A stretch of DNA of 64,000 bases, taken from NCBI GenBank assembly GCA_002104945.1, contig MCFH01000024.1, positions 372,001 to 436,000 of the forward strand, given 5' to 3'. The stretch is from Piromyces finnis finn. Lineage: Eukaryota > Fungi > Neocallimastigomycota. The translations under genes and the position numbers were made by a program. Positions 25,060-49,587 of this stretch are shown here, piece by piece. Under the pieces are notes generated by a model. The model did no database searches and was not told the DNA's origin. It saw only the letters and a program-made list of their open reading frames with translations. The number at the start of each line of letters is the position of its first letter. The first letter of the stretch is position 1.

Positions 25060-26828
25060 TTATTCAGCTTTTTGTTCTTGGTTAGCAATCTTTTCACCCT
25101 TTTCGTTATAATTTTCAATAACCATATCATTAATACCAAAGTCTTCATTTTGTTGGAAGGTTCTTTCGTATTCTTCAATAATCATATTTGGATCTGGATC
25201 TGGAGCGTAAAGGTTTTGAAGGTATGAATTAGCTAATGGATCATCTAAAATAAGAGTAAATTCCTTCTTCATTTCCTTAACTTCATCAAGTTTTGAAAGG
25301 AATTCAGAGAATTTTTCTTTACGTTCTTCGGTAACAGAATCACCCTTAGTGAATGGAGTCTTGGTATCTAATTCTTCGTAAATTTGATCAAGTAAACCTT
25401 CAATAGTAGTGAAACGACCACCTAAAGTACCGTAAGTTAATTCTAAGTTAATTTCTGGAATCTTTAAGGCACAGGTTTCAGACTATTTTTAATTATAAAA
25501 TAATGATTTGTTATGTTAAAAAAAAAATTTATTTTTTTTTTAATAATCTCTTCTTTTTTTTATTCTATCAACTATGCGTTGCTTTTTATTTTAATTTGCT
25601 GCTTACCTTTAAGATATCTCTAGATAAATCTTCTTCATCAGTCATCTTTAAGGTAATACGCTTACCCTTTGGAGCGATAGCACCTCCAGCCTTAACTTCA
25701 TTACTCTTGTAACCACATTCATCACAATTAGTTGCCATAATGACGACTTCTTTAAAGTGAGGAATATTAAGCATGTGCATTTTAGTACTGCATGGAGCCT
25801 TACATGATGGACAAGTAGCATCGAAATGCATAACTTCATCAACATCAATATTAATATCATCTTCCTTTTCTTCCTTTTCAGCTTCTGGGTTGGCAGCAGC
25901 AACAACACCAAGAGCTTCATTTTGTTCCTTGGAACGAACATAGTGTCTAACTTCTAATTGTGGATCAGCAGCTGGAGCATTTAAGTTTTCAACAAAACTG
26001 TTACCAGTTGGATCATCAAGAGTGAAAGTGAATGGTTCATTACCATCACGTAAAGAAGTTAATCTATCAATAACAGATTGAATTTTGTCATATAATTCCT
26101 TATCCATGTGCTGAAATATATAATATTTCGATATAGGTTATATTTTATTGTTAATTTTATCCACATTTTGATATCATAAATATATTTTTTTTTCAATTTT
26201 ATTCTATTTAATTTTTACCATTCTGATTGGTTGTTCTTGGGAAAGACCTTCAATAGCGTGAGTAATGATACCTTCAATAGTAGTTAAAACACCACGTTGA
26301 GAACCAGCTGGAATTTCAAATTCTAATTCTTCAAATCTACAAGTAGAAGTTTCAGCCTTTAAAACTTGTCTACTTAAATCCTATTATAAATAAAAAGAAA
26401 ACCATTATTAGATTTCTATTTGTATTTTTAAAGTTTTTTTTTTTTTTTTTTGAATTAGATAATTTACTCTTGGAGTCTTGATTTGACAAACGGCGTGAAC
26501 ACCAGTTTCAGAAATTTCAGAAGCAGATTGAACTTCATTATTTCTGAAACCACAGTGTGGACATTCAAAAGCCATAATAATAACTTCTCTAAAGTATGGA
26601 ATTTTTGTTAATAATAAACGAGTAGTACCCTATTATTATTCATAAACACAGGATAAATTGAATTACATAAATATTACATTCAAAAAAAAAAAAATATTTT
26701 CTTTTTATTTCATAATAGTGTGATGTTTTTATTATTACATTTTCATGGCAATTCATACAAAGAGATTCAATTTCAGTACAGCCTTGTTCGGCATTAAGTT
26801 CTAAAACAATTGGTTCTGGTTGAGCCAT
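25060..26828 (-). CDS. ZPR1: Zinc-finger protein ZPR1, 5 exons (26828-26739, 26629-26468, 26380-26219, 26110-25607, 25482-25060)
   Basis: Two C4 zinc-finger/AHD modules: 'EIESLCMNCHEN|GTTRLLLTKIPYFREVIIMAFECPHCGFRNNEVQ' and 'FDATCPSCKAPC...IPHFKEVVIMATNCDECGYKSNEVKAGG'. It also has 'FTLDDPTGNSFVEN' and 'LILDDPLANSYLQN'. All introns are GT-AG and the joined frame is open. Confidence 0.97.
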
Positions 26829-28293: not shown

Positions 28294-30808
28294 TTATACT
28301 TGAGAATATTCTCTAATTAAAATTTCATAATATTTTTTCATTTTTGTTAATGTATATAATTTTTGTGAAGTTTTAACAAGTTCTTTATCACAAATTTCAC
28401 AATAATCCATCATTTCATTAATAATATCTTCTTTATTATCATAGAATTCTTCTAATTTTTTACTACTAATTTCTTTGATAGTATTTGTTTCTGTGGTGGT
28501 TTGAAGATTGGAATGACTTCCTTTGTGTGACTTATCATCACTATCTAAACTACTTAAACTTTCAACTTCATCTTTATCTTTTAAAATGTGAACTTCTTCT
28601 TCGTTATCACTAATATCTTCTATGGTTGTTTCCTCATTTTTAATATTATTTTTAATCATATAAAGAATTTCTGGGAGACCTTCATGGTCATCAGTACTAG
28701 ATCTTTTTGGTGTGGTGTAAAGGTTATCAATATCTTCGTCTCTCTTTGGTCTGAAAGTAGTTGGACTTGAAAAGAATGATGATTCTCTTCTTTTTCTAAA
28801 CATTCTTTTTTGTCGTTTTTTGTATCTTTTATTACTTTCTTCGATTGCATTTTTAATTGTTTCATCACGATTAGCTTTGGAATAATCATCAGCAAATGTA
28901 GCATATAAAATGGCATTTGGAATGATGTATAAGAACATAGAAAACTAACATTATTAAATAAATTGATGATGATAATGATAATGATTTATTAAAAATAAAA
29001 TAAATATTAATATTGATTTTGTAAATATTTTTTATTTTTTTTTTTTTTTTGCTAATTTTTTGATATTTACCATAATAGCAAAAAATGCAATAAACTTTCC
29101 TTGAACCTTTTTATAATTTTTAATATTTTTATTAAGAAATATAAAAACATATATATTATATATATTGAATGTTTTATTATTTAAGTTTATTATTTTATTT
29201 TTATAGGTTTATTAAATTTAATGTACTTACAGTAAATGGGAAATAGTCACCATAACCAATACAAACCATAGTAACGGCAGCCCACCAAGAAGATTCAACA
29301 ATCGAGTGACTGTATTTTATTAATTATAATATTATTATTCAGTAATTATATTATCTTTAGGTATTATCATTTATTTTATTAAAATTAATATTTACACTGA
29401 TGCTGGTTCTGCTTGTGTTTCATTTCCAACTTTTGTATAATTTCTAATCCATTTCTTTTTAATGTATAATAATATATATTTATTAATATATTAATTAGTA
29501 TAACAAGTATTAGCTATAAAAAAAATTTTTTTTTTTTTTTTAAATAATTATATGTATATAGCTTGATACCTTTTCATTTGGATCATATTTTGAACCAAAA
29601 ATTTCGGCATGATAGTAAATTGGTGAAATTGCAAGAACACCCAAATAAAAAATGGTATATACGTTGAATAAAAATTTACTATTATCTTTTAAACAATTTA
29701 CAACTATATTAAAATGTTTGGCAAATCCATTTTTCATATGAATGATTCTCATAAATAAACGTATAATTAGAAATTCACTTAATATTGTTGGTATCCAATA
29801 CAATACTTTATTTCCTCTAAAACGAGTTTCGGGGAAAATAAGTTCAATATAAAATGCTGATATACCTAATAAATTTATTGTTCCATTCCACTTGAAATAT
29901 CCTTTATAACGAGCAATAAATTTGTATATTTTCCAATCATGATAAAATCTTTTCTTTTTTTCCTTTTTCTCATTGTACGAAGAGTAAAATAAATAATCGT
30001 CTGATTCTTTTCCATTTTTGTCCTTCTTTCTCTTCTCTTTTTCCATTTCTCTTTCTCTTTTCTTTTTTTGTTTATATTCTTGTTGATGAGAATAACAAAT
30101 TAGATTGTAAATCCATTCTACTGTTAAAAATCCATTAAGAATAAAAAGTAATATATGCCAATTTCTTTCTTGAATTTTGGTATGATTCCAAATCAATTCA
30201 GAATATAAAAGATTTGCAATAATTAAAAATACAAGATCAAAGGTAATAAGATAATTCATAAAAGTAGCAATAGATGAATCTTCAGGATTTTTTGCAATCT
30301 TTAGAAATTGTGTTTTTAATAAGTGAATAAATGAATAATTTTCATTATCAAGATCATTGTAAAAATCATTTTCATTTGGGCCCATGTTTAAACCATTCAT
30401 ACTCATACCTATGCCACCCATACCATTAACTCCCAACATACGACTTCCATTCATATTATATGAACTGCCAGGAAGATATAATTTACTCGCACCTAATCTG
30501 GAAGGATTATTTAAATTTAGACTTCCACTACTATTATATAGATTATCATTAGATTTCAATAAATTAAATTTATTTCTATACGGCTTTCCATCTTTTAAAT
30601 TTAAAGTAGAATTACTTGCATAAGTTGGTGATTTCAAATTAGTTGTAGTGGGTGTGTTTAAATCATTTACATTTTGAAAAATTAATTCTTGATTAAATGT
30701 TCCTGTATATATAGGAATATTAGGTAAATCTTGGAAATTAGGTAAATGAGGTTGATGAGAAGCCAATGGCTTTTTATTATCGTTTAAATTATCTTTATTT
30801 CCTTTCAT
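28294..30808 (-). CDS. 6TM K+-channel-like subunit 1 (filter TMVCIGYGD), 5 exons (30808-29570, 29454-29396, 29309-29231, 29106-29071, 28944-28294)
   Basis: S1-S5 helices lie in ORF 29540-30808. The pore exon reads 'HSIVESSWWAAVTMVCIGYGDYFPFT', S6 reads 'VQGKFIAFFAIM|FSMFLYIIPNAIL', and there is a C-terminal helical tail. Confidence 0.88.
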
Positions 30809-31018
30809 TATTTATAATTAACATATATTAAATAAAATATTATTTTTTTTTTTATCTTTATTTAAATACACTATTAATACTTTATTTTAAATTTGTTTGT
30901 ATTTCTATTGTATTTTAATTTTATTTTATATTCTACAAAATTGTTACTGGCATTAAGAATTTTATTAATGAAAATGTATATATGTATAAATTAATAAATT
31001 GATTATTAAAGGTATATT

Positions 31019-31061
<43 letters not shown>

Positions 31062-32566
31062 GGGTATGTTTTATACGAAATTATTCTTGCTTTTTGTTTA
31101 TCGAAATAAAGTGTGTGAATTTATTTTTTATATAAACATTTTATACTGAATTTGAATTGAAATTCATATACTTTACAATAATGCGCTATTAAAGTTTTTT
31201 ATGTACACATATATATTTTATAAATATAAATAAATATTAATATGAATTTTGAATAAAGGAATACTCAATTGTTGTTATTATTTTTTTTTAATTTAAAAAT
31301 TATACATTAATTATTTTTTCTAATTTTTTTTTATTTTTATTTTTTTTTTAAAGAAAAGGCTTTTCCCATATAAATTTGATTTTAATTAAAGTGTTGGTTA
31401 GGTAAAATATATTAAAAAATTAATTTTTTTTTTCATTAAATTTAATTATTAAGAAAAAGATTATTGAGCTATTAAATGTAAAGATATTGTTATAAATGAA
31501 TTTTCAAATAATAAAACCGGGTTATATATATATATATTTATTATTAAGTACTAATACTTTTACAATATAAAAAGCAACAATATTTATAATTACTATTCAA
31601 ATAATAACAATAATAATAAAAATACTATTAATAATAATAAAAGTAAGAGGTCCAAAATTATTTTTTCAATGTTTTTTGATAATAGTGTATAAAATGTTTA
31701 AAAAAACACTATTATATATATACATTAAAATTTAACATTTATATATAGTAACATCAAAACTAGCTTTTTTTTTTTTTTTTTTATAATCTGGTAGATGGTA
31801 GATAAAATAAAAAAGAAAAACGGCGGTAAATTTTAATTATTTCAATTTTAATTTTTATAGAAATTTTTGTATATTAAAAGCGCTACTAACAATCATATTT
31901 AAATAAAATATGTTAATACTAATTAATTGTTATTGTTTTAATCCTACAAAGTTAAGTTTTAAAGAAGAAACGTAACAAAAATGTTATTATTATTGTATTT
32001 TTTTTTTGTATTTTTTTTGAAAAAAAAATACTATTATTATTATTTTAATATTTAAAAATAAAAAAATTAATAAAGAATTAACTTTTAAATGGGTGAGCTT
32101 TTTTGCTTTTTATATTAGTAAGTAATTTTATTTATATTTAATAAAAAATGAACTTTAAACTTTAATAATATATATCTTTATAAATCAAGGTAAATATAAC
32201 TTTTTATTAGATATAAAATGTAAAGTAAAAATTTTTAATAACATATACCATAAAAAATGTCATAAAATAGTAGTAATAAAATATCAATGTAGATGTTTTG
32301 TTAAAATAACCGATTTTTTTTATTAAAAAAATTCTAATATTGAATTATCAATTTATTATTTATTATTAAGTTTCTATACCTGTATTTTTAACGTTTAACA
32401 AATATTAAATAATTATACAATATTAATAACACTATCTCTTATTTATGTGATAATAAATCAAGAATTTAATATTGTATATATAAATATTTTATTAACAATT
32501 TCGAAGATACGTAAGAAACAAACAAACAAAAAGAAAAATCATAATTATAAAATAGAGGCAATAAAA

Positions 32567-34965
32567 ATGATGAAATCAACCAAGAAAGAAACGGTTGATA
32601 CAATAAAGCAAACAATCAATGTTTTAACAGTATTACTATATAATAGTCGACTATGTTCAAATAATTGTTTTCTTAATTTGATAAATTTTATGAATTTTTT
32701 TGTGACTTTGATAGCAATTTACATATTTTTCATATCTTCTATACCGGCTTATCGAGGAAAAAATTTAGAAAAACTTAATATATTCGAGTATTTAATAACA
32801 ACGTATTATATTGTGGAAATTCTTATACGATATATTTTATATACTTTTTTCGATGTGACAACATTTGGTCGAATTGATGAATTCTATTTAGAAAAAGAAT
32901 CTATATTAGATTTGAGTGAAAGGCAATATCGTGTGATAACCGTTGGAAATGATAATAATAGTAAAAAGAATATGAAAGATAGAAAAAAAAAAAAGAAAAA
33001 TTTTTTACATTTAATTAGATTTTTTGTGAATAAAATGGAAATAATATGTTTATTAAGTATGCCTAATCATTAATAATAAATTAATTATTTTGTTATTCCT
33101 TTTAGAAAAATATATATTAATTTTTTTTTTTTTAATATATATATTTCAAAGATATAATGCCATTATTTGTTAGAATGATTATAAATAAAAACTTGTTGGA
33201 AATATATAATGATTCTAAATTAAGCTCACTTATTTCTATTTTTCAATATACACGATTAATCCGTTTTTCTATTTATATTATTAATACAAGACTATCAAAA
33301 ATTTTTAAATTTGATATGTTAATAAAGGTATTTAAAAATTCAAAGGAAGGACTTATATCAACATTTTTATTGTCAATATGGACTATTGTATTTTTTTCAA
33401 ATTTCTTTTATTTTGCAGAAACATATGACTGTCATTTTGATGAACAAACAGAAGTAAGAAAACAACATTTTAATATAAAAAATTTAAGATAAAAAAAAAA
33501 AAATTATTAATTCATATATTTTGTAATAATGGATAATATTAATATTTATTTCTATAAATATATTTAATTTTTTTTTTTTTTTCAATATTACAAATATAAT
33601 ACTGAAACATTATAGACATATTATAGATTTAATAAATCTAATGAAAGAGAAGAATGCAAAGTGTAAGTGATAAAAAATTAAATATAAATGCAAATTGAAT
33701 AAGGATTAAAAAAAAAGAAAAAAAATTTTTTTATAACAATTTTTAAAAATTAATAATAATTATTTTTATAAAAAAAAAAAAAAAGACAATCAATAATAGA
33801 TGCTTATTGGTGGGCAGTTGTTACTATTCAATGTATAGGTTATGGTGATTTAACACCATCCACTACAATGGGGAAAATTATTAATGGATGTATTGTTTTA
33901 ATTGCTAATGTAATTTTTTCAATTCCTAGTGCTATTTTAACAATTGAATTTTTGGATTTGATAATAAAAACAAAGAAAGATGAAGTGATAGAAAAAGCAG
34001 TTATAAAATGTGAATCAAAAATAGAAAAAGCAAGAAAGAAGAATTTTCAAAAGGAATTAATGAATATTATATCTCAAGAAAATATTCAAAATAATGCAAA
34101 TACATTTATTAAATATTATTCCATTAATGAAACTCTTTATGATAGTGGTGGTATTTTTAATATAAACAATAGAAATAATGATGGACCAGCAAATGTAATT
34201 GATTTATTTAAACTTAAAAAAAGCAATAATTCAATTGGACATCTAATAGAAAGAAGAAAAAGTACCAATTCAACTGGTGGTTATTTGTTAGAAAGAAGAG
34301 GTAGTAAAGGAAATAATTTAATGAATTATCATCCACCGTTGAATAGAATTTATGGAAGTAAGGAATCAATTCATAATTCAAAACCAGGATTAAATTATGA
34401 ATTATACAATAAACCTACAAAAGGTAATACACTTACAGAATATATTGGTCCAATAAAAATAGGCTCATTAAATGAAAGGAATACAGTTACAAACAGTAAA
34501 ATATTGAAAACTAGTGAGTTAGAATTAGATGATCCTACAACAACAATTAAGTATGGGTTAGGTGATAAATTACTATCAAAACAAAATAATAATCCCGATT
34601 TACTCAAGCTTAACAGAATTATAAAGAATCAACAATATTTAAATAGATTAACAACTCAAGCGAATAATTATTCAGGGATTTCTCACATGAGGGGAAACAA
34701 TAGTTCTTATTACTTAACAGGATCTTCTGAAAAGAACCGTAAAAATGAAAAGGGAGAGATTGCTATTGAATTTAAGTTGGGTGAAGTAAAATATATGTCA
34801 GCTAGAGAAATAAGTAAGGAACTATATAAACTCTCTATGGAATACTATGCACAATGTGATGATGAATTTTCTGAGGTTGATGAACAATCTGGTACATTAT
34901 ATTTATTAATGAAAGGTTTTGAAAAAACTCTTCGTTGTATTCGAAAGATTAAAGGAACAAAGTAA
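32567..34965 (+). CDS. 6TM K+-channel-like subunit 2 (filter TIQCIGYGD), 4 exons (32567-33056, 33152-33453, 33616-33662, 33786-34965)
   Basis: The AAAAATG start at 32567 is preferred over the GTG-initiated ORF at 32447. S4 is 'QYTRLIRF'. The pore and S6 read 'QSIIDAYWWAVVTIQCIGYGDLTPSTTMGKIINGCIVLIANVIFSIPSAIL'. Confidence 0.9.
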
Positions 34966-35384
34966 AGTTAATAATCAACAAATTGAAGTATAAAGTTTTT
35001 TAAGTACTTTTAATCTCTATCCAATAATTTATACTTTTTTTTTTTAAATCATTTTTTTTATAACAAAAATAGTTTATTATTCACAATTTTTAAGTATAAA
35101 TATTACCAAAGTATTGATTACATTTTTACACAAGTAAGCAAATGTATATTTTTTTTTTAAAATAAAATAGTTAGTTATTATAATTCTATTATTTAATATA
35201 ATTGTAAATAAAATATTAGAAAAATATAATATTAATTAATAGTTGAATGTAATGTATATCTTAAACATAATAATACTATTATTATATTCTATCGTTTAAT
35301 CATTACCTTAACAACACAATATTTTAAATATAATGTAATATAATATTATTTTTTATATAAAATATTTATTATATTAAAATTTCA

Positions 35385-35589
35385 AATATAACATTAAATA
35401 AACAATCTAAAATAATAAATTATTTTAAATATAACATTATAAGCAATCTAAAATAATAAATTATTTTAAATATAACATTATAAGCAATCTAAAATAATAA
35501 ATTATTTTAAATATAACATTATAAGCAATCTAAAATAATAAATTATTTTAAATATAACATTATAAGCAATCTAAAATAGTAAATTATTT
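35385..35589. repeat. 41-bp minisatellite, ~5 copies
   Basis: Unit AATATAACATTATAAGCAATCTAAAATAATAAATTATTTTA. GCAATCT recurs at 35443, 35484, 35525 and 35566. The first and last copies are slightly degenerate. Confidence 0.92.
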
Positions 35590-37116
35590 CATATTTCATC
35601 ACTCTCTTCATACATTTATTTTGTATAACAAGACGGTAGATGTAATGTCTACTTTTTCTATTACAATTTTTTTTATTTATAGCTTCAACATTTGTACAAC
35701 TTTATACCAATATTTTTAAAATTATTGGTGGACATATAAAGTTCAGCTATCTTTTTTTTTTTTTTTTTTTTTTTTACAGAAATCAAGTCATCATTAAATC
35801 AACTTTTTATTTTCAAATAATGATATCTCTAATTTTAATTTCATTAATTCTATAAGTATTACTATGTTTAATTGATTTTTCTTTATTTTAATATTTCTCA
35901 TTACATTGTGATATGTTTTTTTTTTTTTTTTTTATAATTATGAGTTGGTTGTTACTTTAACTGCTTACTTGCTTACAGACGTTGTTGTATTTAATATATA
36001 TATAATTTAATTATCAACAATTTTTTAATTATTATTAATTAATTTCATTAATAAAAAACTTTAAATATTAGTATAATCAAATTTTATTTTTTTAACCAAT
36101 TAAAGTAATAGATTGTAATATATAATATATATTATAATATAATATTTTCTATTTAATTAGTATATAATTTTGTATTAACCATATATTAGTTATTTTATTT
36201 AAAAGTAATCAATTTAAATTTAATTAAAATTGATAGAGTAATGTAATTGTAATATATTTCATTTAAATTATGCAGAAATTTTATTTACCATCCAAAGTTT
36301 TCTGCGAATGGATAAATAAATGTATAAATAAATTAACATTTAAATAAATGATTTAATAAAATTAAATAAACAAATATATAAAAATAGATAAATAGTGTGA
36401 AAAGTTTTTTTTTTTTTTAATTATTATTAAATAAGATTTAATTGCACAAGTAAAAAAAAAAAAGGCATAAAAAATTAGAAAAATTATTGAATAAAAAAAA
36501 AAAGTTCTTTTACTGCTAAAAAAAAAAAAAAAAAATAAAAAGAAAGAAAGGAATTAAAATAAAGTAATAATCAAGCAAATAAGAAAGCAGCAAGAAAACA
36601 AGCAAGCAATAAATAAAAAAACAAACAAATACAAAGATATTTATAGAAAAGAAATTAAATTTTACAATTAATAAATTATAACATTAATCAGATAATTATT
36701 AATTTATTGTAGGTAACCCATTTTTTTTATATCGTTAAAATTGAATAGTTACATTGTGCTATTTTTTTTTTAATGATACTTTATTAAACGATTTTATGTA
36801 TTTTATTATTTAATATTATTATATAATTGAAACAATATATAACCATCATTATCATTATTTATTTTTAAGGATAAAGGTCTAACTAAAATATCTTTATTAT
36901 ATCTTTATTCATAATTATACATAGTCTATATATAAAATCTTAAACATCATTCTTTAAAATACATAAGTCAAAATATTTTAAATAATTTAAAAGAAGCAAA
37001 TGAAAATATATTAAATATTATTATTTTAAAGTAAAAGAAAAAAGAATTTTTAAAAAACAAAAAACAAAAAAATAAAATAAAAAACTTTTATATATGAAAA
37101 ATATATCCTAAAGAAT

Positions 37117-39261
37117 ATGCCAGGAACAAATCAACCCTCAGGTTTTGTGGATAAAGCAATACACAAATTGTATAATGACAAACTGTGTTCACAGAATAAA
37201 ATTTTAAATATAATAAATTATTTCAATTTTTTCTTTGTCATAGCTACTATATATATACTATATGTTTCTTCTTTACCACAATATCAAATTGAAGAAGACG
37301 ATAAAAGACTTTTCGAAATACTTGAAATCATAATCACTTCATATTTTGGCATAGAACTCTTAATAAGATATATTTTATATACTTTTTTCAGCGTTACTAT
37401 CAATGACCGTGAAAAAGAATTTGATAAATATTTTCATAGAAATGTAAAAAATGACATTGATTATCATTTCATTACTATGAGTGGTGGAACAGGAAAAGGT
37501 GTCAGTCGATCAAAAAGACAACGTGAAATACTTACTTCCTCATTTGTTCATTATATCAAATTTTTTAAGAGCAAAATTGAAATTAATAATTTAATTAGTA
37601 AATATATTGATTATTTATTTAAATTATCATTTTTTATTATTTAGATATATTTTATTAATTAGCATTCATACTATATATGTATGTATATTTAATATCATAG
37701 GTATAATACCATATTTTGTTGATAAATTATTCCCACAATTACTTCTAATTAATAATTCATATATTAATTGGATTCCAACAGCATTAAGATATACCCGTAT
37801 TATTCGTTTTATGTATTATTTTGGTAATACACGCTTTTTTACATTTATAAAAATGCCATCCCTTTTAAAAGTTTTAAAGAATTCAGGTGATGGTTTTATT
37901 ACTGTGACGGTATTAGTATTATGGTCGATGATGTTTTTCAGTAGTTTCTTTTTTTATGCAGAAACCCATGATTGTGAATTTGATCCAAAAACTGAGGTAT
38001 TTTTATTTTTATTTATTTTTTTTTTTTAAAAAGAATAACTAAAATAATATAATAAAAAAAAAATAAATAAAAGAAGATATATGGATAAATTTTTTTTAAA
38101 TATTAATATAAAAAATATTTTAATTAAATATACCATTTTTCTTATTAATGTTTATATCTATTAAATGAAATATTAGCAATTTTATAGACAAACCAAAGAT
38201 GGTCCTAAAAAGTGTCTCGTGTAAGTAGTATTATTATTAAAGAATTTAATTATATGTTATTTTATTACAATAACAAAAATTATTCATGAAACATATTAAT
38301 GGAATAAAACCATTTTTTTATAATATTAATATTTAGAAATTCTATTATCGATTCGTATTGGTGGGGTTTGGTAACTGTTACATGTCTTGGTTATGGTGAT
38401 ACAACACCAGTAACAGCACCAGGTAAAGTCGTAAATGGCATTACTATTATTTTTGCAATTATGATCTTCCCAATTCCAAGTTCTATATTAACTATTGAAT
38501 TTATGGAATTCCTGGTTCAACTTAAAAAGAATGAAACTATTGAAAATGCAGTAAAGGAATGCGAAAAGAAAATTGAAAAAGCTAGAAAAAAAAGAGTTAA
38601 AAAAGAATTGAAAGATATTATATCTACAAGAGCCTTTTCTAATAGTACAAATACTTTCTTAAAATATTATTCAATTCATACATCTGCTGGTAATCCTTCA
38701 GGGTTAACATATTTGGCAAACACCAGAAATGATCCAGTAAACATTACTAATTTATTTAAAAATGATAATGATGTAATAAAAGAAGTTAATGAAAATGGAA
38801 CATCAAGTAACGATTTACTTTACGATTCAACCACAACCATTAAATATTCATTGTCAAAACAACTATTAAAAAATAAGGATCCTGAAATTGAAGAATTAAA
38901 AAGTATTATTCAAGACCAGAAAAATTTACATAAAGCTACAGTAAGTTTTAACAAAATTCCAAAATCAAGTAAGGATAATGAAATAAATCCTGCCTATTTA
39001 TCAACGGAATTTGTCCATAATCGTAAGAATAGTCAAGGGAAAATCGAAGTTGATATGAATATGGGTGAAATTAAAAATATGACTGTGGGTGAAATTAGTA
39101 AAGAACTTTATAAATTATCAATGGAATATTATGCCTTTTGTGATAATGAAATTAGTGAAGTTGATGAACAAACCGGTACTTTATATTTATTAATGAATGG
39201 TTTAGATAAAACAATTAATCTAGTAAATGCTTTAAGCCATAAAAGAAAATCTATTCAATAA
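37117..39261 (+). CDS. 6TM K+-channel-like subunit 3 (filter TVTCLGYGD), 4 exons (37117-37597, 37701-37996, 38177-38220, 38337-39261)
   Basis: S4 is 'LRYTRIIRF'. The pore and S6 read 'NSIIDSYWWGLVTVTCLGYGDTTPVTAPGKVVNG...FPIPSSIL'. It has the same intron positions as subunit 2 and a closely similar C-terminus. Confidence 0.9.
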
Positions 39262-39900
39262 ATTTTTATTTAAGATTTTTTTTTTTCTTTTTCTTTTTCT
39301 TTTCATTTTCATTTTTTGTTTTTTACTTTATTTTTTTTATCGTATACTATATACCAATATATAAATAATTACTAATTCTATTACGGCTATATCTAGTTTT
39401 TGGTTTTTAGTTTATTTTCTTTTCTTTTCCTTTTTATTTTTAAAAGGTTAAAAAATAATTCTTATAAATTATAATACCAGTTAGATTTTATTTATGTATT
39501 TATAAATATATATAAAATTGTTATATGATTTTATAAAATAAAAAATTTTATTATACATTTTTATAATAAAATATTAAATATATATATATATATATATCAA
39601 ATATCAAATATAAAATTAAAATATAATAAACACAAACATAAACGTAAATATAATAATAATAAAAAAAATCTTGGCAAATAAAATAAAAAATATATAAAAT
39701 AATTTTATATTAACATAAACCTGCAGTCAAAAAAAAAAAAAAAGTTAAAAGCCTACCCATTTTTTTTTTTTTTTTAGATGAAAGTACTTATTTGACTTTT
39801 AAGTATTACTTTTTATTTTTATAAATGTATTTATTTTTTAATGAAAAATATTAAACTAATAGCATATATCTATTTCAATTAATAGAAACAATAAAACAAA

Positions 39901-40054
<154 letters not shown>

Positions 40055-40149
40055 TTTTTACTAGATTCACTTTTTATTTTTACATGGTGAATAAATACTT
40101 TATTATTATTTAATTATTAAATTAATTTTTTTTTATTTTTATTTTATTT

Positions 40150-40198
<49 letters not shown>

Positions 40199-40206
40199 TA
40201 TATTTC

Positions 40207-42918
<2,712 letters not shown>

Positions 42919-45182
42919 TTTTTGTTATTATTATTACTATTATTATAAATATTGAGGTATGTTGGTATATTTTGATATTATATATATATATATATTTTTT
43001 TTTTTTTCTTTTAATTTTTTTTACAATTTTTTCTATTTTTTATTTGAAATTAATACAATTAATTTCAATAAATTGAATTTCTTTTTAAATATATAAAAAA
43101 CTATTCAATTTATTTTTATTAATCTTACTACTAAATTTATGATAAAATATGAATTAATATATTTAAAAATAAAAAAAAAAAAGATATTAATTATTTGAAT
43201 TTATTGAATATTAATATTATTCAAAGTATTAAAAATACTTGAATATTAACTAATAATTGGTTTTTTTTTTTAATTTAAACTCAATTTAAATGTAAAATAA
43301 TTTATTATAAATTCTTTATTTCCTTATTTAAAGTAATCATTATTAGGATATTTATATTTATTACCTTTTTTTTCTTTTTATAATAATTTATGAAATATAT
43401 TACAATTAATAAATCATTGTTTTATATTTTTAATTTGAATTTATTTTTTTTTTATAAATTTATTTTTTATATTAATTTATTTTCTTTGTTTTTATTTTTT
43501 ATTCAATTCTTTTTCTATTTAACACTTTTTTTTTTTTTTTTTTCTTTCGATTCTTACTGTTTCTTTACTTTTTCTTTTATTAATTCATGAATAAAAAATA
43601 AATACAAATAATAAAAGGGAAAAAAAAAAAAAAAAAAAAAAAAATTCATTTCATATAATTTAATATAATTTTAAAAAATAAAATTTTTTATTTTAATATA
43701 AAACATAATTATTATAAAAAAAAAAAAAGAATATAATAATTAAAAACTATAGAAACAAATAATTATTTGAAAAAAAGAACAAGAAAAAAGAAACAAATAT
43801 TCATTCAAAAGAAAAGAAAATGGCAGGGCATCTTTATCTTTATTGTGTGTGTGTGTTTTTATTTCTTGTAAATAATCAATTTAAAGTATTTTTTGTGGCT
43901 TTAATTTCTGGTTTTAATCAAAGTATATTTAAAGTTGACATGTTCCACTTTTAAAGTTTATATTCTATATTCAAAATTCATTTTATTATTTTATTATATT
44001 TTATTAGTAATTACAATTTAATGATTCTATTTTAAATAATATATATATAATATTTAACTTGTTGGTTACTTTTACATTATTTCTTTTATAAGATAAAAAA
44101 GAAGAAGTTATTTTTAATCCAATATAATTATAAAAAATAGATTAATTCTTACTCTATAGTATTTGATTTATAAAACATAGGCATTATTTAAATATTTTAA
44201 AAAAGACTTTTTGTATATATATATATTTCTTTTTTTTATACTAGTCAAATGAAAATGTTGAGAAACATAGCTTAACAATCCATTTCATTAAAATATTACT
44301 TTTTTTAAATATGATTATTTTATTTGTTTCCAATTTCGATTCCTTTTATTAACTTTAAACTACTCCATATTTAAAAACAACAACAACTGATAAATGCTAA
44401 TGCTATATAGGAAAGGAAAAAAAAAAAAACTTTATATTTGGGATAAAATAAAACTTTTTTTTTTTTATTATAAAGTTTTCAATAAGAAAAAATTTTTTTT
44501 TTTAAATAAATTAATTCTTTTAAATTTTTATTAAATTGATATAAAAAATTAAAGATTTTTTTTTTTCTTTTTTTTATAATTTAAACTTTAGAAAAAAGAG
44601 TCCATCTTGAAGTTCAATAGAATATATTTAAAAAATAACATAAATTTTATTATAATAATCAAAATATAAAAAAAATATAATAAAATTAAATAAATGAAAG
44701 AATACAAATGATATAAAAATTGAAAAAACAGGATATATTCATAATTATTTCTATAGAACTTAATTAACAGCCATATATTTTTTTTTATTTCCAAATTTTC
44801 TTTTAAGTAAGAGTACATAAAGGAAATAGAATCAAAGTTAAAAAATACTATCTTCGATTAATAAATATCAGATTCTTTAAGAAATAAAAAGCATATAATA
44901 AAAAAAAATATATTAATTTCAATAAAGAATTAAAAAAAAAAAAAAAAACTTATTATTGAGAGAAAACCAAACTATCTAAAGGGAATATATTAATTTATAA
45001 TTTTATATCCGGTTTTTTTTTCTTCTTAAAAAAAACTTACACAAAATCAATCAATATATAATAATTTTGGAATCATTATAGGTAAAAAAAAAAAAAAATT
45101 ATTATAATAATTATTATTATAATAATAAAATAATAAAAAATATAATTAATTAAAAGTTAGAAATAATAAGTCAATATTAAAA

Positions 45183-48159
45183 ATGTCAGATAAAGAAATA
45201 AATGAAAATTCTGAATCAAATCAAGTAAAAAATAAGGAATTTAAGATACCAAAAATAGAACTTACCACAACATCATTTGATAATTATACATTAAATAAAG
45301 AGGGAACTATCAAAAAGCAAAGTGATATAACTCAATTAGAAAATTTATTTATAGACCCAAAACTTGAATCTACAAATAAAGAGGATTTTAATCATTTAAG
45401 AACAAAGAGAAACTCAATTCTTCGTATACCTGAAAAGTCAAATAATGTAACAAAAAGTTTAGATTACTTATCAATTAATACTCATACTAACCATTTACAA
45501 AATCATGCCACTTCTCCATTAAAATCATCAAATGATAATCATTTAACTCCATTAAAAAATGGATTTAGTAAAAGTCAACCAAATATGTTAAGAGAAGAAG
45601 AGGAAACTGTAAATCTTCAAAAACATATATCAAAAATGTTCAACCATGCATTTACTGATGCTATATATAGTCCTAGAGATTCTTGGCTTGCATCAGTTTT
45701 TAATATTTATCATGCCATTATTTTATACGTTTCAGTGTTTTTAGAATGTTATTCAACTCAACTTATGGTACAAGAAACAAAATCAGAAAGAACAGCATGG
45801 AGAGTTGTTTCATTAATTTTCACTATTCAGTTATGTATTTATTTCATAGCTGCTGTTATTTTATATCCTATTCGCAAGAGACGTCATTTAGCTATTATCG
45901 AAGCGGCTACCTCCACAAAAAATCAAAATGAAAACGGGGAAACTATTACTTATAAGAACGTTAATGTAACAAAAAATCCAATCGAACTTTACAAAGGTTT
46001 TATTGATTTTCCACATATAATGGAATTCTTAGGATGCCTTCCATTTTTTGTAGAAGAAATATTCCCAAAATGTCGTCTCATTAATGTAAATCATTATGGG
46101 TTAATTTCATTCCTTTTGCTTTGTTGTCGTCTTTACACTAGTTTAAGTATATTCTATTACTTGAGAAATCGCATTTCCAAATTTTTCCATATTATTATAA
46201 GGGCTACTAAGGAATCACTCTATGAAATCATATCTGTTATTGTTATATATTTTATTGTGATGATCTTTTGTTCAAGAATTATTTTTTATGCCGATTTATC
46301 AAAATGTACTCTTGATGAAGCTTCACAAGTTAGTAAAAAATATATATTTTTTTATTTTAAATATAGAATGATTTTTATAAATATTTTGTATTCTAACCTG
46401 TACAATGAATATTTATCTTAAAATAGAACTGGAAACGTCAAAATGAAGATGGCACAGTTAATATGGAGGAATCCTGTGAATTGTAAGGAATTTATTTTAT
46501 AATTATAAATTGATTTTTTTTTATTATAATGTAATTTGATTAAATTTATATATGTTTATTTTTTTTTTAATTTATTTATATATAAGACAATCAAATCTTG
46601 ACGCTTTTTGGTATACATTTATGACAATGACAACATTAGGTTTTGGTGATCAAGTAGTTAATACAGTGAGTATTATTATAATCATCATCATCATTATTAT
46701 CAATTTTATTATCATCATAAACTTTTTATTATTTATTATATATATAAAAAATATTAATGATTCATTTAAATTGTAAATTATAAAATTAATTTATAGTATT
46801 TTGGCAAGATTATGGCAACACTTGCATTTGGGGTAAATATTATTATAGAATTGTTAATATTAATAAAAATTTATCATCAATATTTTATTTTGTTAATACT
46901 AATGGTATATTAAATTTAAATAGGCAACACCAATTTTGTATACTTTACCATCTATTGTAATTACTACAAAAATGATTACATTAATTATACATGATACTAA
47001 AAGTGCTGCCACCAAAGATGTTGCTAAAAAACATAAAAGAAAATTTTTCAATATGACTCAATTTCTTTCAGGTAATAATAATAGAAAAAACAAATTATCT
47101 AAGTTAAAGAAAGGCAAAAATAATAATGATGATGATATGAAAATAGCAAATATTGATAATGAAAATGAATCCAAGTTAAAGAGTAAAAATAAGAAAAAGG
47201 ATAATTATTCGGAAAAAATTCACATCCATAATAAAAATAATGGAAAAGAAAAACAAGGAAGATACATTGTTCCATTGCATGATAAAAGTTCTGGAAATGA
47301 TAGAGAAGATATAAAGAAATCTACTTTAACAGTTCCACACGTTAAAAAAGAGGAAGCCTCGATAGCTTCATCCATAGCACCACTTATAAATGGAAATCCA
47401 ATTACTTCATTTGATACCAAAGATAGTAAAGATTTTAGTTTCTCAAATAGTAATCCTAGTAGTGAAAGTCATCCTAATAGTAATATAGATGAAAATGAAA
47501 CACCAAAAGAGAATATTAAAGAAGATATTGAAGCATCTTTAACAGAAGAATCAGATCAACCAAATATGTGTGAAAGTCCTAAAACTATAGAAGAGGAACC
47601 ATCTCTTGTTCATAAATCCTCAAAGGAATTTGGTCCTTCAGAGCTAAATCAATCAATAATAAATCAAAAAGGTGACTTGTTTTCTTCTGCTAATTTAACA
47701 TCATCCATGACCATTAAAAAATTTTATCAAGATAATCCTTTATCAGTTGGTAAACCATTAGCTTCAATTTTTGAAAACCCGGAATCCGATCGAATTAATA
47801 ATGATGAAGACAAAGATATCCATCCACCTGTATCTTCATCAGCCACAGCATCAAATTCTAATATTAATAATTCTAATTTAAGTGTTACAAAATCCAAGGG
47901 AAAAGGAATATTTAAATCTCTACCTGCCCTAAATTCAACCGGTAGTGGTAGCAATAGTGAAACCGAAAATGAATCTACCATATTTGATTATAATGCCTAT
48001 AAGAAAAACGCTAATAATAAGAATTATATTGTTGGTATGTTAAAACAACATTATCAAACTTGTCTTGATGAAATTGATTATGTTAGAAAACGTGAAAAAA
48101 CATTAAATTCATTGAAAAGTGGGTTTGAAAAAGGTATTATGGCACTTCAAACCATGTAA
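45183..48159 (+). CDS. 6TM K+-channel-like subunit 5 (filter TMTTLGFGD), 5 exons (45183-46328, 46427-46482, 46587-46665, 46797-46832, 46924-48159)
   Basis: The pore exon reads 'QSNLDAFWYTFMTMTTLGFGDQVVNT' and S6 reads 'YFGKIMATLAFG|ATPILYTLPSIVI'. S4 is nearly uncharged ('LLCCRLYTSL'). Both cytoplasmic tails are long and low-complexity. Confidence 0.88.
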
Positions 48160-48200
48160 ATTATTTTATAACAATAAGCATAATAATTGTTATAATTTAC

Positions 48201-48237
<37 letters not shown>

Positions 48238-49587
48238 AATAGATAAATGTATTAAATATAATTATTTTTTCAAGACAAAATAAAAATAAATAAAAAAAAG
48301 AAATGTTTTTTTTTTTTTTATTTTTATACCAATTCAATAAATGAATTACTTTTGTAATAGATATAAAATGTAAAATATAAAAAGCAATTAAAAAAAAAAA
48401 AAAAAGAATTAAAATAATATAAATTATTAAAATAATACTAATAAAAAAAAAACAAAATAGAATGTTATTAAATAAACTAGGTTTAATTGTAAAAATGCAT
48501 ATTTCCTTTATTTCTTTATAAATCATGGCATTTTTTATGAGGTGTAAGAGCCTTATTATTATTTTAATTATTTTACATTACCAATTATTACCAATTAGTA
48601 CATATTACATTTATTATACATTATGAAAAAAAACATTTTTTATATTCATATTGTATTTATTCCTAATTTTTAATCATTAATTTTTAGTGGTTAAGAAAGT
48701 CATCTCAATATAAAAAATTTAAATAGATTTAATTAAATAAATATATTGATAATATAATCAGATATATATTATTCATATAATAATCAAATGTTGTATTAAG
48801 AAAATAAAATTTTTAATTTTTTTTTTTTTATTTTTATTCCATTGCCGTGTTTTAATTTTTTTTTCTTTACGCTTTATCATTTAAAATATTAATTATAGAA
48901 ACATAGTTGTATTATTAATCAATAAATATATAATTAATAATACGGAAAAAGAAATTAAATAATTAAAGGGAAAGACATAAAAGATTTATATATATATATT
49001 AAAGGTAAATATTGATTTTCAAAAAAAAAATATATAAAATAGATATGGATAATATTTTATATGGAATTAATTTTCGAAACGATAATCGAGTGATTTTGGA
49101 ATATTCAAGATACCTAGTTACAAGTTTAGATAATATAAATGTACCTAAAAAGAAACTCAAAAAATAGTAGAGCCATTGAAAAATTATTAATTTTCGGATA
49201 AACAATATATTAAAAATTTAATAATTTCATAATAATATCATTCAATTAAGGAATACCAAATTTTTTCTAAGTTGTCATTATAAAAAAAAGATTAAATATA
49301 TATTACATGAAATAAATATAAAGTATTTATATTATTTTAATTTCATTGAACATAATGTAACTAATTATTATTGAAGAGAAAAGCTTTTATATAATTTATG
49401 TTGAATTTGGAATTAATAAATTTGTTATAATACATATAAATTATTAATAAATAAATATTTGTATTACTATTATTATATATTGTATTCTTCCCTCCTTTTT
49501 CTTTTCAACAAAGTAGAATTAAATTGTAATTTAATTTTCAGTACATTTATTAAAATTCAAATATATCCTAAATAGTAAAGTTCAATA

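Follow-up and report, generated by a model that had tools for sequence, protein, structure and literature searches.

A probable ancient tandem array of five Kv-like potassium channel subunit genes in the anaerobic gut fungus Piromyces finnis

Results

A five-gene array and its gene structures

A 64,000-nucleotide stretch of Piromyces finnis DNA (contig MCFH01000024.1 of assembly GCA_002104945.1, positions 372,001 to 436,000 of the forward strand), referred to here as the window, contains between positions 28294 and 48159 five intron-containing Kv-like genes, designated g1 to g5, which lie in the order - + + - +. The combined evidence makes it very probable that these genes form an ancient tandem array encoding five paralogous Kv-like K+ channel subunits of the Shaker superfamily, of the kind defined as fungal Shaker-like channels (SKC). 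What appears to be new is modest, namely the conserved array, a C-terminal helix specific to the clade, and an uneven loss of voltage-sensor charges among the members; knowledge of the channel family itself is unchanged, fungal Shaker-like channels and Piromyces members having already been published.

Gene models were built from channel-like open reading frame pieces, recognized in six-frame translation and joined via canonical GT-AG introns of 86-207 nt. As shown in Table 1, this approach yielded five coding sequences, all of them stop-free, that encode proteins of 581-850 aa. The g5 model was identical to a public protein (P0159), and the g3 model had the length of its public counterpart. 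The 3' part of g1 was 100% identical to P. finnis BCR36DRAFT_291769 (P0009); this public g1 model of 433 aa comprises only the 3' 433 residues, begins at residue 255, and is without transmembrane segments S1-S2. In g1, an open frame extends upstream as far as the ATG at 30808, and a transcript-type contig of an orthologue spans the missing part. The public g4 model (P0184, 659 aa) omits 22 residues, located in the last part of S5 and in the turret, that an orthologue contig (P0054) retains. On these comparisons, the public P. finnis models of g1 and g4 look wrong.

The exon junctions of all five genes gave gap-free alignments to an orthologue (P0023 in the case of g2, and P0016 in the case of g3). 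Moreover, intron-free contigs carrying orthologues were found for g1 (L007), g4 (L004, protein P0054) and g5 (L005, protein P0061) in samples 3300030641 and 3300018087 of the Joint Genome Institute (JGI). When the DNA of these three contigs was compared with the window, the aligned blocks, at 78-91% nucleotide identity, stopped at the modelled exon borders. As transcript-type evidence from related fungi, these contigs bear out the modelled introns of g1, g4 and g5. Four sequencing runs, which are presumed only to be RNA, contained 59-69% of the words of positions 37000-42990, close to the exon share of 63% there.

The five genes follow one another without other genes between them. From g2 to g5, the public annotation contains zero other genes; between the orthologues of g1 and g2, zero genes were called at three other loci; and a scan for tRNA genes in 31400-49000 found none. 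The intergenic spacers measure 945-2264 bp and have a GC content of 10-14%, that of the window being ~18%. By gene orientation, the two head-to-head spacers (g1/g2 and g4/g5) are candidates for promoter sharing.

Table 1. Positions of the array genes, their recurrent elements and other features of the window.
Feature	Position	Strand	Details
g1	30808-28294	-	exons 30808-29570, 29454-29396, 29309-29231, 29106-29071, 28944-28294; 687 aa; filter CIGYGD
g2	32567-34965	+	exons 32567-33056, 33152-33453, 33616-33662, 33786-34965; 672 aa; filter CIGYGD
g3	37117-39261	+	exons 37117-37597, 37701-37996, 38177-38220, 38337-39261; 581 aa; filter CLGYGD
g4	42918-40207	-	exons 42918-42157, 41949-41888, 41795-41717, 41518-41483, 41313-40207; 681 aa; filter TIGYGD
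g5	45183-48159	+	exons 45183-46328, 46427-46482, 46587-46665, 46797-46832, 46924-48159; 850 aa; filter TLGFGD; most diverged member
Turret micro-exon	g1 29396-29454 (-), g2 33616-33662 (+), g3 38177-38220 (+), g4 41949-41888 (-), g5 46427-46482 (+)		44-62 nt; g1 59 nt
C-terminal helix domain	g1 28297-28440 (-), g2 34807-34962 (+), g3 39091-39258 (+), g4 40210-40380 (-), g5 48013-48156 (+)		final 48-57 residues; g4 residues 625-681
g1/g2 head-to-head spacer	30809-32566		1758 bp, 14% GC; candidate shared promoter region
g4/g5 head-to-head spacer	42919-45182		2264 bp; candidate shared promoter region
Microsatellite	39879-40070		(TTTA)n
Microsatellite	41577-41709		(TTTA)n
Microsatellite	42072-42147		(AAT)n
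ZPR1 zinc-finger exon	25586-26107	-	downstream of g1; Zn_ribbon_ZPR1 2e-27, jr-ZPR1 1e-21

Subunit architecture and family placement

Each subunit begins with an S1-S4 sensor and an S4-S5 linker of ~15 residues. S5 and the turret, which bears cysteines, lead to the pore helix and the G[YF]GD filter, and S6 contains the proline of the gating hinge; beyond S6, a long helix is followed by a disordered low-complexity stretch and then by a conserved C-terminal helix of ~50 residues. Pfam searches, in which g5 itself was used and orthologues stood in for g1-g4, detected Ion_trans (PF00520) and Ion_trans_2 (PF07885) only. For Ion_trans (cut-off 25 bits), scores of 40.6, 29.3 and 54.8 bits were obtained with the orthologues of g1, g2 and g3, respectively, 55.7 bits with exon 1 of g4 (5e-15), and 30.4 bits with g5, whereas Ion_trans_2 scored 29.6-37.2 bits against a cut-off of 22.5. 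In the same set of proteins, BTB_2/T1 (PF02214) was not found at E <= 0.01, nor was cNMP_binding; in g2 and g3, only ~30 residues precede S1.

When the g1 orthologue was compared with the PDB by phmmer, the best match was Kv2.1 (2e-9), followed by Kv1.x, Kv3.1, Shaker and KCNQ1. The g3 orthologue P0016 aligned with Kv2.1 from S3 through S6 (E 4e-14), the S4 segments being in register. For the g4 orthologue P0054, AlphaFold2 gave a model with a mean predicted local distance difference test score (pLDDT) of 59, and of 75-90 in the transmembrane core. The model comprises six transmembrane helices, a pore helix, an S6 that is helical to residue 378, ~245 disordered residues, and an end helix at residues 624-682. 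The 50 best Foldseek matches of this model in the PDB were Kv4, Kv2, Kv1, Kv3, Shaker and KCNQ1 structures only (E from 4e-9, target TM-score <=0.71), and no HCN, EAG or KAT structure was among them. A search of the ESM Atlas, which returned only generic Ion_trans clusters (oomycetes, haptophytes, diatoms), was set aside. Taken together, these data identify g1-g5 as Kv-like subunits akin to the domain-swapped Kv1-4/KCNQ channels and without a T1 domain or a cyclic-nucleotide-binding domain (CNBD), and their sequence features would place them in the K+ channel branch of the voltage-gated ion channel superfamily (TCDB 1.A.1).

Much of this had been anticipated by an earlier interpretation made from the letters of the window without database searches (the sequence-only reading). 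The five genes that it had called, in the order and at the positions given here, were recovered as stop-free GT-AG models. S1-S6, a pore helix of the form S[IN][IVL][DE]..W[WY], a GxG filter and an S6 proline, which it had attributed to every member, were present in all five, and the absence of T1 and cyclic-nucleotide-binding domains agreed with the Pfam results on g5 and the orthologues of g1-g4. The gene-free spacing that it had described held for g2-g5 in the public annotation, for g1-g2 at three orthologous loci, and for tRNA genes across 31400-49000. The Pfam check that it had proposed returned Ion_trans above the cut-off for g5, g4 exon 1 and the orthologues of g1-g3.

Pore and voltage sensor

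Pore and sensor states were read from sequence alignments. The pore helices of g1 to g5 read SIVESSWW, SIIDAYWW, SIIDSYWW, SIIDSLWY and SNLDAFWY, and the S6 proline motifs IIPNA, SIPSA, PIPSS, ALPTI and TLPSI, respectively, that of g3 being a P-I-P. The S6 proline (P324 of P0054) was invariant across an alignment of 36 relatives. When compared with the pattern T/S-x-G-[YF]-G-D, the filters of g4 and g5 are canonical and those of g1-g3 have Thr exchanged for Cys (C[IL]GYGD), G[YF]GD being present in all five. The filter Cys of g1-g3 likely alters the innermost K+ site and conductance. Two turret cysteines are present in g2-g5, as they are in a protein of the chytrid Quaeritorhiza, and g1 lacks both. 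The filter of the g5 orthologue P0061, encoded by L005 from a related gut fungus, reads TLGLGD where that of g5 reads TLGFGD; among six-transmembrane (6TM) K+ channels, a GLG filter is unusual.

The voltage sensors differ markedly among the paralogues. The E(+10)E(+14)R pattern of Shaker-type S2 segments is retained in g2 and g3; in g4 it is represented by E...D, whereas g1 retains one acidic residue and g5 has none. Read at every third residue, S4 shows Q R R.. R K K in g2, R R R.. R. K in g3 and R R R Q. R in g4, and only two in-register charges each in g1 and g5 (Arg in g5). At the residue aligned to the fourth S4 arginine of Kv2.1 (the RILRILK stretch), all five genes have Arg or Lys. Inspection of the alignments by eye further indicated that four of the five genes have Asn or Cys at the position of the S3 Asp. 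Given that these sensor and pore states are conserved in orthologues, they represent fixed properties rather than decay. Because g2, g3 and g4 combine an S2 acidic pair with two or three N-terminal S4 arginines and further in-register Arg (in g2 and g3 also Lys), they are probably voltage-gated; g1 and g5, having lost most of their sensor charges, are probably weakly voltage-dependent or otherwise gated. By homology to Kv channels, four subunits would assemble into a K+-selective pore with domain-swapped sensors.

A predicted C-terminal helix in gut-fungal proteins

The C-terminal helices of all five proteins have the motif [YH]xxxCxxE ... L ... E in common. Orthologues are 87-100% identical over this helix, whereas paralogues are only 12-25% identical, apart from g2 and g3 (65%). 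In P0054, residues 624-682 were predicted to be helical with pLDDT ~74-85. Comparison of the helix with Pfam and the PDB gave chance-level matches only, and a hidden Markov model (HMM) of the domain detected only gut-fungal proteins among 199 proteins. A C-terminal helix of Coelomomyces that looked similar by eye was rejected, the domain HMM giving E > 10. Given that g1-g5 are without T1, their C-terminal helix would form a coiled coil through which the tetramers assemble, by analogy with KCNQ and EAG channels, and is a putative tetramerisation or assembly-specificity domain. Because its sequence is paralogue-specific, the channels would be expected to be mostly homomeric, with g2 and g3 as possible partners.

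Descent of the five paralogues by local duplication

Relatives were collected by an exhaustive HMMER search with the g1 orthologue against 1.84 billion cluster representatives, which gave 2955 matches at E <= 1e-3, of which 109 reached <= 1e-10 and 4 reached <= 1e-30. The best 150 of the 2955 were examined; they end at E 5.7e-10, where g5 itself sits. Trees were computed on the S3-S6 core by FastTree (138 rows) and by IQ-TREE under LG+C20 (67 rows), neither including a row for a g2 orthologue. Among the relatives sampled, the five orthogroups formed one clade with a support of 99 in FastTree and 98/96 in IQ-TREE. This clade sits on a long stem, and within it the groups are g1, (g2,g3) and (g4,g5). 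The window genes paired with N. californiae (Neocallimastix californiae; g1, g3) and with contigs of related gut fungi (g1, g4, g5). Among the named outsiders were four from Holomycota (the chytrid Quaeritorhiza, the blastoclad Coelomomyces, the glomeromycete Ambispora and the nucleariid Lithocolla) as well as a choanoflagellate, Cercozoa and diplonemids, and the trees leave the branching order of the outsiders relative to the gut-fungal clade unresolved. In a composition screen of the 199 proteins collected, no gut-fungal paralogue outside the five orthogroups was found, the matches covered being the best 150 of the 2955.

Diphylleia and similar organisms were rejected as closest relatives, as their E-values are inflated by four repeated domains per protein and do not reflect kinship. 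In four such proteins among the protist matches (P0013, P0161, P0166 and P0169), a single polypeptide comprises four 6TM K+-channel-like repeats in tandem, with Kv-like pores; the Diphylleia rotans transcripts encode ~1150 aa, and another protein has 1748 aa.

Intron positions were also informative. All five genes contain a turret micro-exon, preceded by a phase-0 intron (after S5) and followed by a phase-2 intron that lies just ahead of the pore helix. Given that the position and phase of this micro-exon are common to all five, descent by duplication is supported independently of the tree. Moreover, g1, g4 and g5 have a post-filter and a mid-S6 intron in common, and g2 and g3 an S3 intron. 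Insertions between S2 and S3 and between S4 and S5 were present in all five and absent from the chytrid, blastoclad, glomeromycete, choanoflagellate and cercozoan relatives. Pairwise protein identity among g1-g5 was only 19-25%, except for g2 and g3 (44.5%). The proposal in the sequence-only reading that the genes are too diverged to be assembly duplicates accords with these identities, and the local tandem expansion that it had suggested agrees with the single clade (98/96) and the common intron positions. These combined data indicate that the array arose by local duplication before the split of Piromyces and Neocallimastix.

Conservation of the array and purifying selection

A synteny comparison, also proposed earlier, located the array twice in N. 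californiae and once in GCA_002157105.1, an assembly that we take to be Piromyces sp. E2. On N. californiae MCOG01000219.1 (L006), 1:1 orthologues occur as g1(-) g2(+) g3(+) g4(-) g5(+), exactly as in the window. A second copy on MCOG01000059.1 (L002) comprises at least g3-g2-g1-ZPR1; the two copies are diverged and could represent a segmental duplication or separately assembled haplotypes. In GCA_002157105.1 (L008), the order ZPR1-g1-g2-g3-g4 was followed up to the end of the stretch examined, the g3 model there being partial (278 aa). Orthologues of g2 were found at the matching position in all three of these loci. ZPR1 adjoins g1 in the window, in N. californiae and in GCA_002157105.1, and Tim17 comes after g5. 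Judging from these comparisons, array order and orientation have been retained since the Piromyces/Neocallimastix split.

When the genes were compared with those of N. californiae, the ratio of nonsynonymous to synonymous substitution rates (dN/dS) was 0.125, 0.26, 0.19, 0.12 and 0.18 for g1 to g5, respectively, at dS ~0.9-1.1. Against the intron-free contigs, the ratio was 0.07 for g1, 0.09 for g4 and 0.23 for g5, the last being composed of 0.145 in the core and 0.31 past it. These values indicate that all five genes are kept by purifying selection.

Repeats in the window

Long (TTTA)n microsatellites occur in the g3/g4 spacer and in intron 3 of g4, and an (AAT)n run lies at the start of g4 intron 1. 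The microsatellite in the g3/g4 spacer takes in a repeat at 39913-40036.

Discussion

Several points weigh against interpreting the locus as an ancient array of five Kv-like channel subunits. The splicing of the gene models draws its support from orthologues in related fungi, and transcript-type contigs were found for g1, g4 and g5 and none for g2 or g3. If these points are taken with the differences between the public and present models of g1 and g4, and with the partial g3 model of GCA_002157105.1, one might suppose that at least one of the five is an expressed pseudogene or is mis-modelled, so that fewer than five genes work. We regard this as highly improbable, given that in all five genes every exon is open and bounded by canonical splice sites, that dN/dS is 0.12-0.26 throughout, that every junction is gap-free against orthologues, and that g1, g4 and g5 have orthologues on intron-free contigs. 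With respect to descent, single-clade support could be inflated by long branches and a common AT-driven amino-acid bias, for long branches meet here, and more gut-fungal paralogues or closer fungal relatives may lie beyond the best 150 of the 2955 matches. With respect to structure, the domain-swapped layout was read from linker length and the best structural matches, and the putative coiled-coil or tetramerisation role is suggested by one monomer model of mean pLDDT 59, the Pfam and PDB matches of the helix being at chance level. In addition, Garcia et al. 2020 reported that two fungal channels of this kind, HcSKC and LbSKC, yielded no K+ currents when tried in oocytes or yeast (PMC7678990, legend of the S4 table).

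Alternatives to five K+-selective, largely homomeric channels also need to be considered. HCN channels have a CIGYG filter and are weakly K+-selective. Some members, above all g5 with its GFGD filter and g1-g3, in which Cys for Thr gives the filter an HCN-like C-[IL]-GYG string, might therefore be cation channels of weak selectivity or regulatory proteins that do not conduct, a view with which the TLGLGD filter of P0061 and the dN/dS of g5 against its intron-free contig, the highest of the three at 0.23 overall and 0.31 past the core, would also agree. We nevertheless consider it unlikely. The Asp-containing G[YF]GD, the W[WY] of the pore helix and the S6 proline are present in all five and conserved in orthologues, Kv1-4 and KCNQ, rather than HCN, gave the highest-ranking matches in both sequence and fold, and the core of g5 has a dN/dS of 0.145; moreover, GFG filters of the kind found in g5 are K+-selective in EAG/ERG and Kir6 channels. 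A different possibility is that the channels are obligate heteromers, in which the sensor-degenerate g1 and g5, like animal 'silent' KvS subunits, would act only when co-assembled with g2-g4, the array being kept by co-regulation of the g1/g2 and g4/g5 pairs. The retention of order and orientation in three genomes, the two head-to-head pairs with their spacers of 1.8-2.3 kb, the uneven loss of sensor charges among paralogues, the helix motif [YH]xxxCxxE common to all five, and the recovery of g4 and g5 orthologue contigs from one JGI sample would all fit such an arrangement. Yet the C-terminal helix, divergent between paralogues (g2/g3 excepted) and well conserved between orthologues, has the pattern expected of an assembly-specificity element, and tandem arrays can persist without a functional reason. 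Obligate heteromerisation seems quite unlikely to us. Decidedly unlikely, too, is the further idea of a co-regulated 'channel operon-like' unit in which g1 and g5 would be modulatory, co-assembling with g2-g4 via the C-terminal helix, and which would be used in zoospore excitability; if true, fungi would have in this array their own counterpart of the Kv2/KvS system of animals. The interpretation that we prefer remains an ancient tandem array of Shaker-superfamily K+ channel subunits.

Two claims of the sequence-only reading did not survive comparison with existing knowledge. It had suggested an undescribed channel family; however, the NCBI entries for P. finnis g4 and for the g1 and g4 orthologues of N. 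californiae are already named 'voltage-gated potassium channel', and voltage-gated K+ channels (TCDB 1.A.1) were mentioned in gut-fungal transcriptomes by Seppälä et al. 2016 (PMC5168858). Moreover, the family of fungal Shaker-like channels goes back to Garcia et al. 2020 (PMC7678990), who reported it from Cryptomycota, Chytridiomycota, Blastocladiomycota, Zoopagomycota, Mucoromycota and Agaricomycotina. Their table lists four members from Piromyces sp. E2 (JGI PirE2_1 11144, 11147, 5730 and 67540), and two of the four, gm1.10090_g and gm1.10093_g, are three gene-model numbers apart, as would be expected of members of an array. The number of copies had likewise been thought unusual; because Catenaria has five SKC copies and Allomyces and Gonapodya have three each (PMC7678990), several copies in a zoosporic fungus are not unusual. 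The earlier reading had itself stated that already-described orthologues at similar copy number across fungi would count against it, and this is partly the case, in that SKC is described and several copies are present in zoosporic fungi. A literature search found no paper on the five-gene array or on the C-terminal helix.

With regard to significance, the present work provides a checked set of Kv-like channels of anaerobic gut fungi, comprising five orthogroups and two corrected public gene structures, and a syntenic array that is usable as a marker locus. On a common scaffold, the paralogues also present voltage sensors that grade naturally from a high charge to almost none; this series could serve structure-function work and could help to ask how zoosporic fungi set their membrane potential. 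The cellular role of the channels may lie in setting the membrane potential or in K+ homeostasis, in the thallus or in the zoospore.

Comparison with known channels

Among the CNBD-family channels, HCN has the same filter string, C-I-G-Y-G, as g1 and g2, and EAG/ERG have a GFG filter, as g5 does. Unlike HCN, EAG and the plant channels KAT1/AKT1, however, g1-g5 have no CNBD, PAS or C-linker domain, and CNBD-family channels accounted for 0 of the top 50 fold and 0 of the top 60 sequence matches. Channels of the CNBD group have a short S4-S5 linker, whereas in sequence alignment that of g1-g5 is long, like that of the domain-swapped Kv channels. KCNQ/Kv7 channels, which assemble via C-terminal coiled-coil helices, share with g1-g5 a Kv-type core without T1 and were present among both the sequence and the fold matches. 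In contrast to the similarity with Kv1-4, that with KCNQ/Kv7 was confined to the pore region and scored lower; the KCNQ-specific Pfam domain was not found in the proteins scanned, and the C-terminal helix of g1-g5 is unmatched to anything known.

Animal Kv1-Kv4 channels provided the best sequence and fold matches (Kv2.1, 8sd3; Kv4.2, 7e84; the Kv1.2-2.1 chimera, 2r9r). In common with them, g2 and g3 have the E...E...R pattern of S2, and the gut-fungal subunits have S4 arginines spaced three residues apart, ~15 residues in the S4-S5 linker, and an S6 proline at the position of the PVP hinge; their pore helix and filter closely resemble those of Kv2.1. The gut-fungal subunits differ from them in having no T1/BTB domain, fewer S4 charges, a filter Cys in g1-g3, the substitution of the S3 Asp in four of five members, and a long disordered C-terminus with an end helix.

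A further close system is that of the fungal SKC, exemplified by HcSKC of Hebeloma cylindrosporum. The conserved five-gene array is unmentioned in the paper that described these channels (PMC7678990), and, compared with them, the gut-fungal clade has a long stem, its own S2-S3 and S4-S5 insertions, the C-terminal helix and a reduced S4 charge. The SKC occur in basal fungi, are multi-copy in zoosporic species, and include Piromyces sp. E2 proteins in their phylogeny; fungal and nucleariid relatives from Quaeritorhiza, Coelomomyces, Ambispora and Lithocolla were among the matches of the gut-fungal channels, and the Quaeritorhiza protein resembles these channels in its pair of turret cysteines and in the QSI[VI]D with which its pore helix starts. 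The G[YF]G[DE] motif by which SKC are recognized is present in g1-g5, and, by motif and published description, the five proteins are like HcSKC in being 6TM Kv-like subunits with this pore motif.

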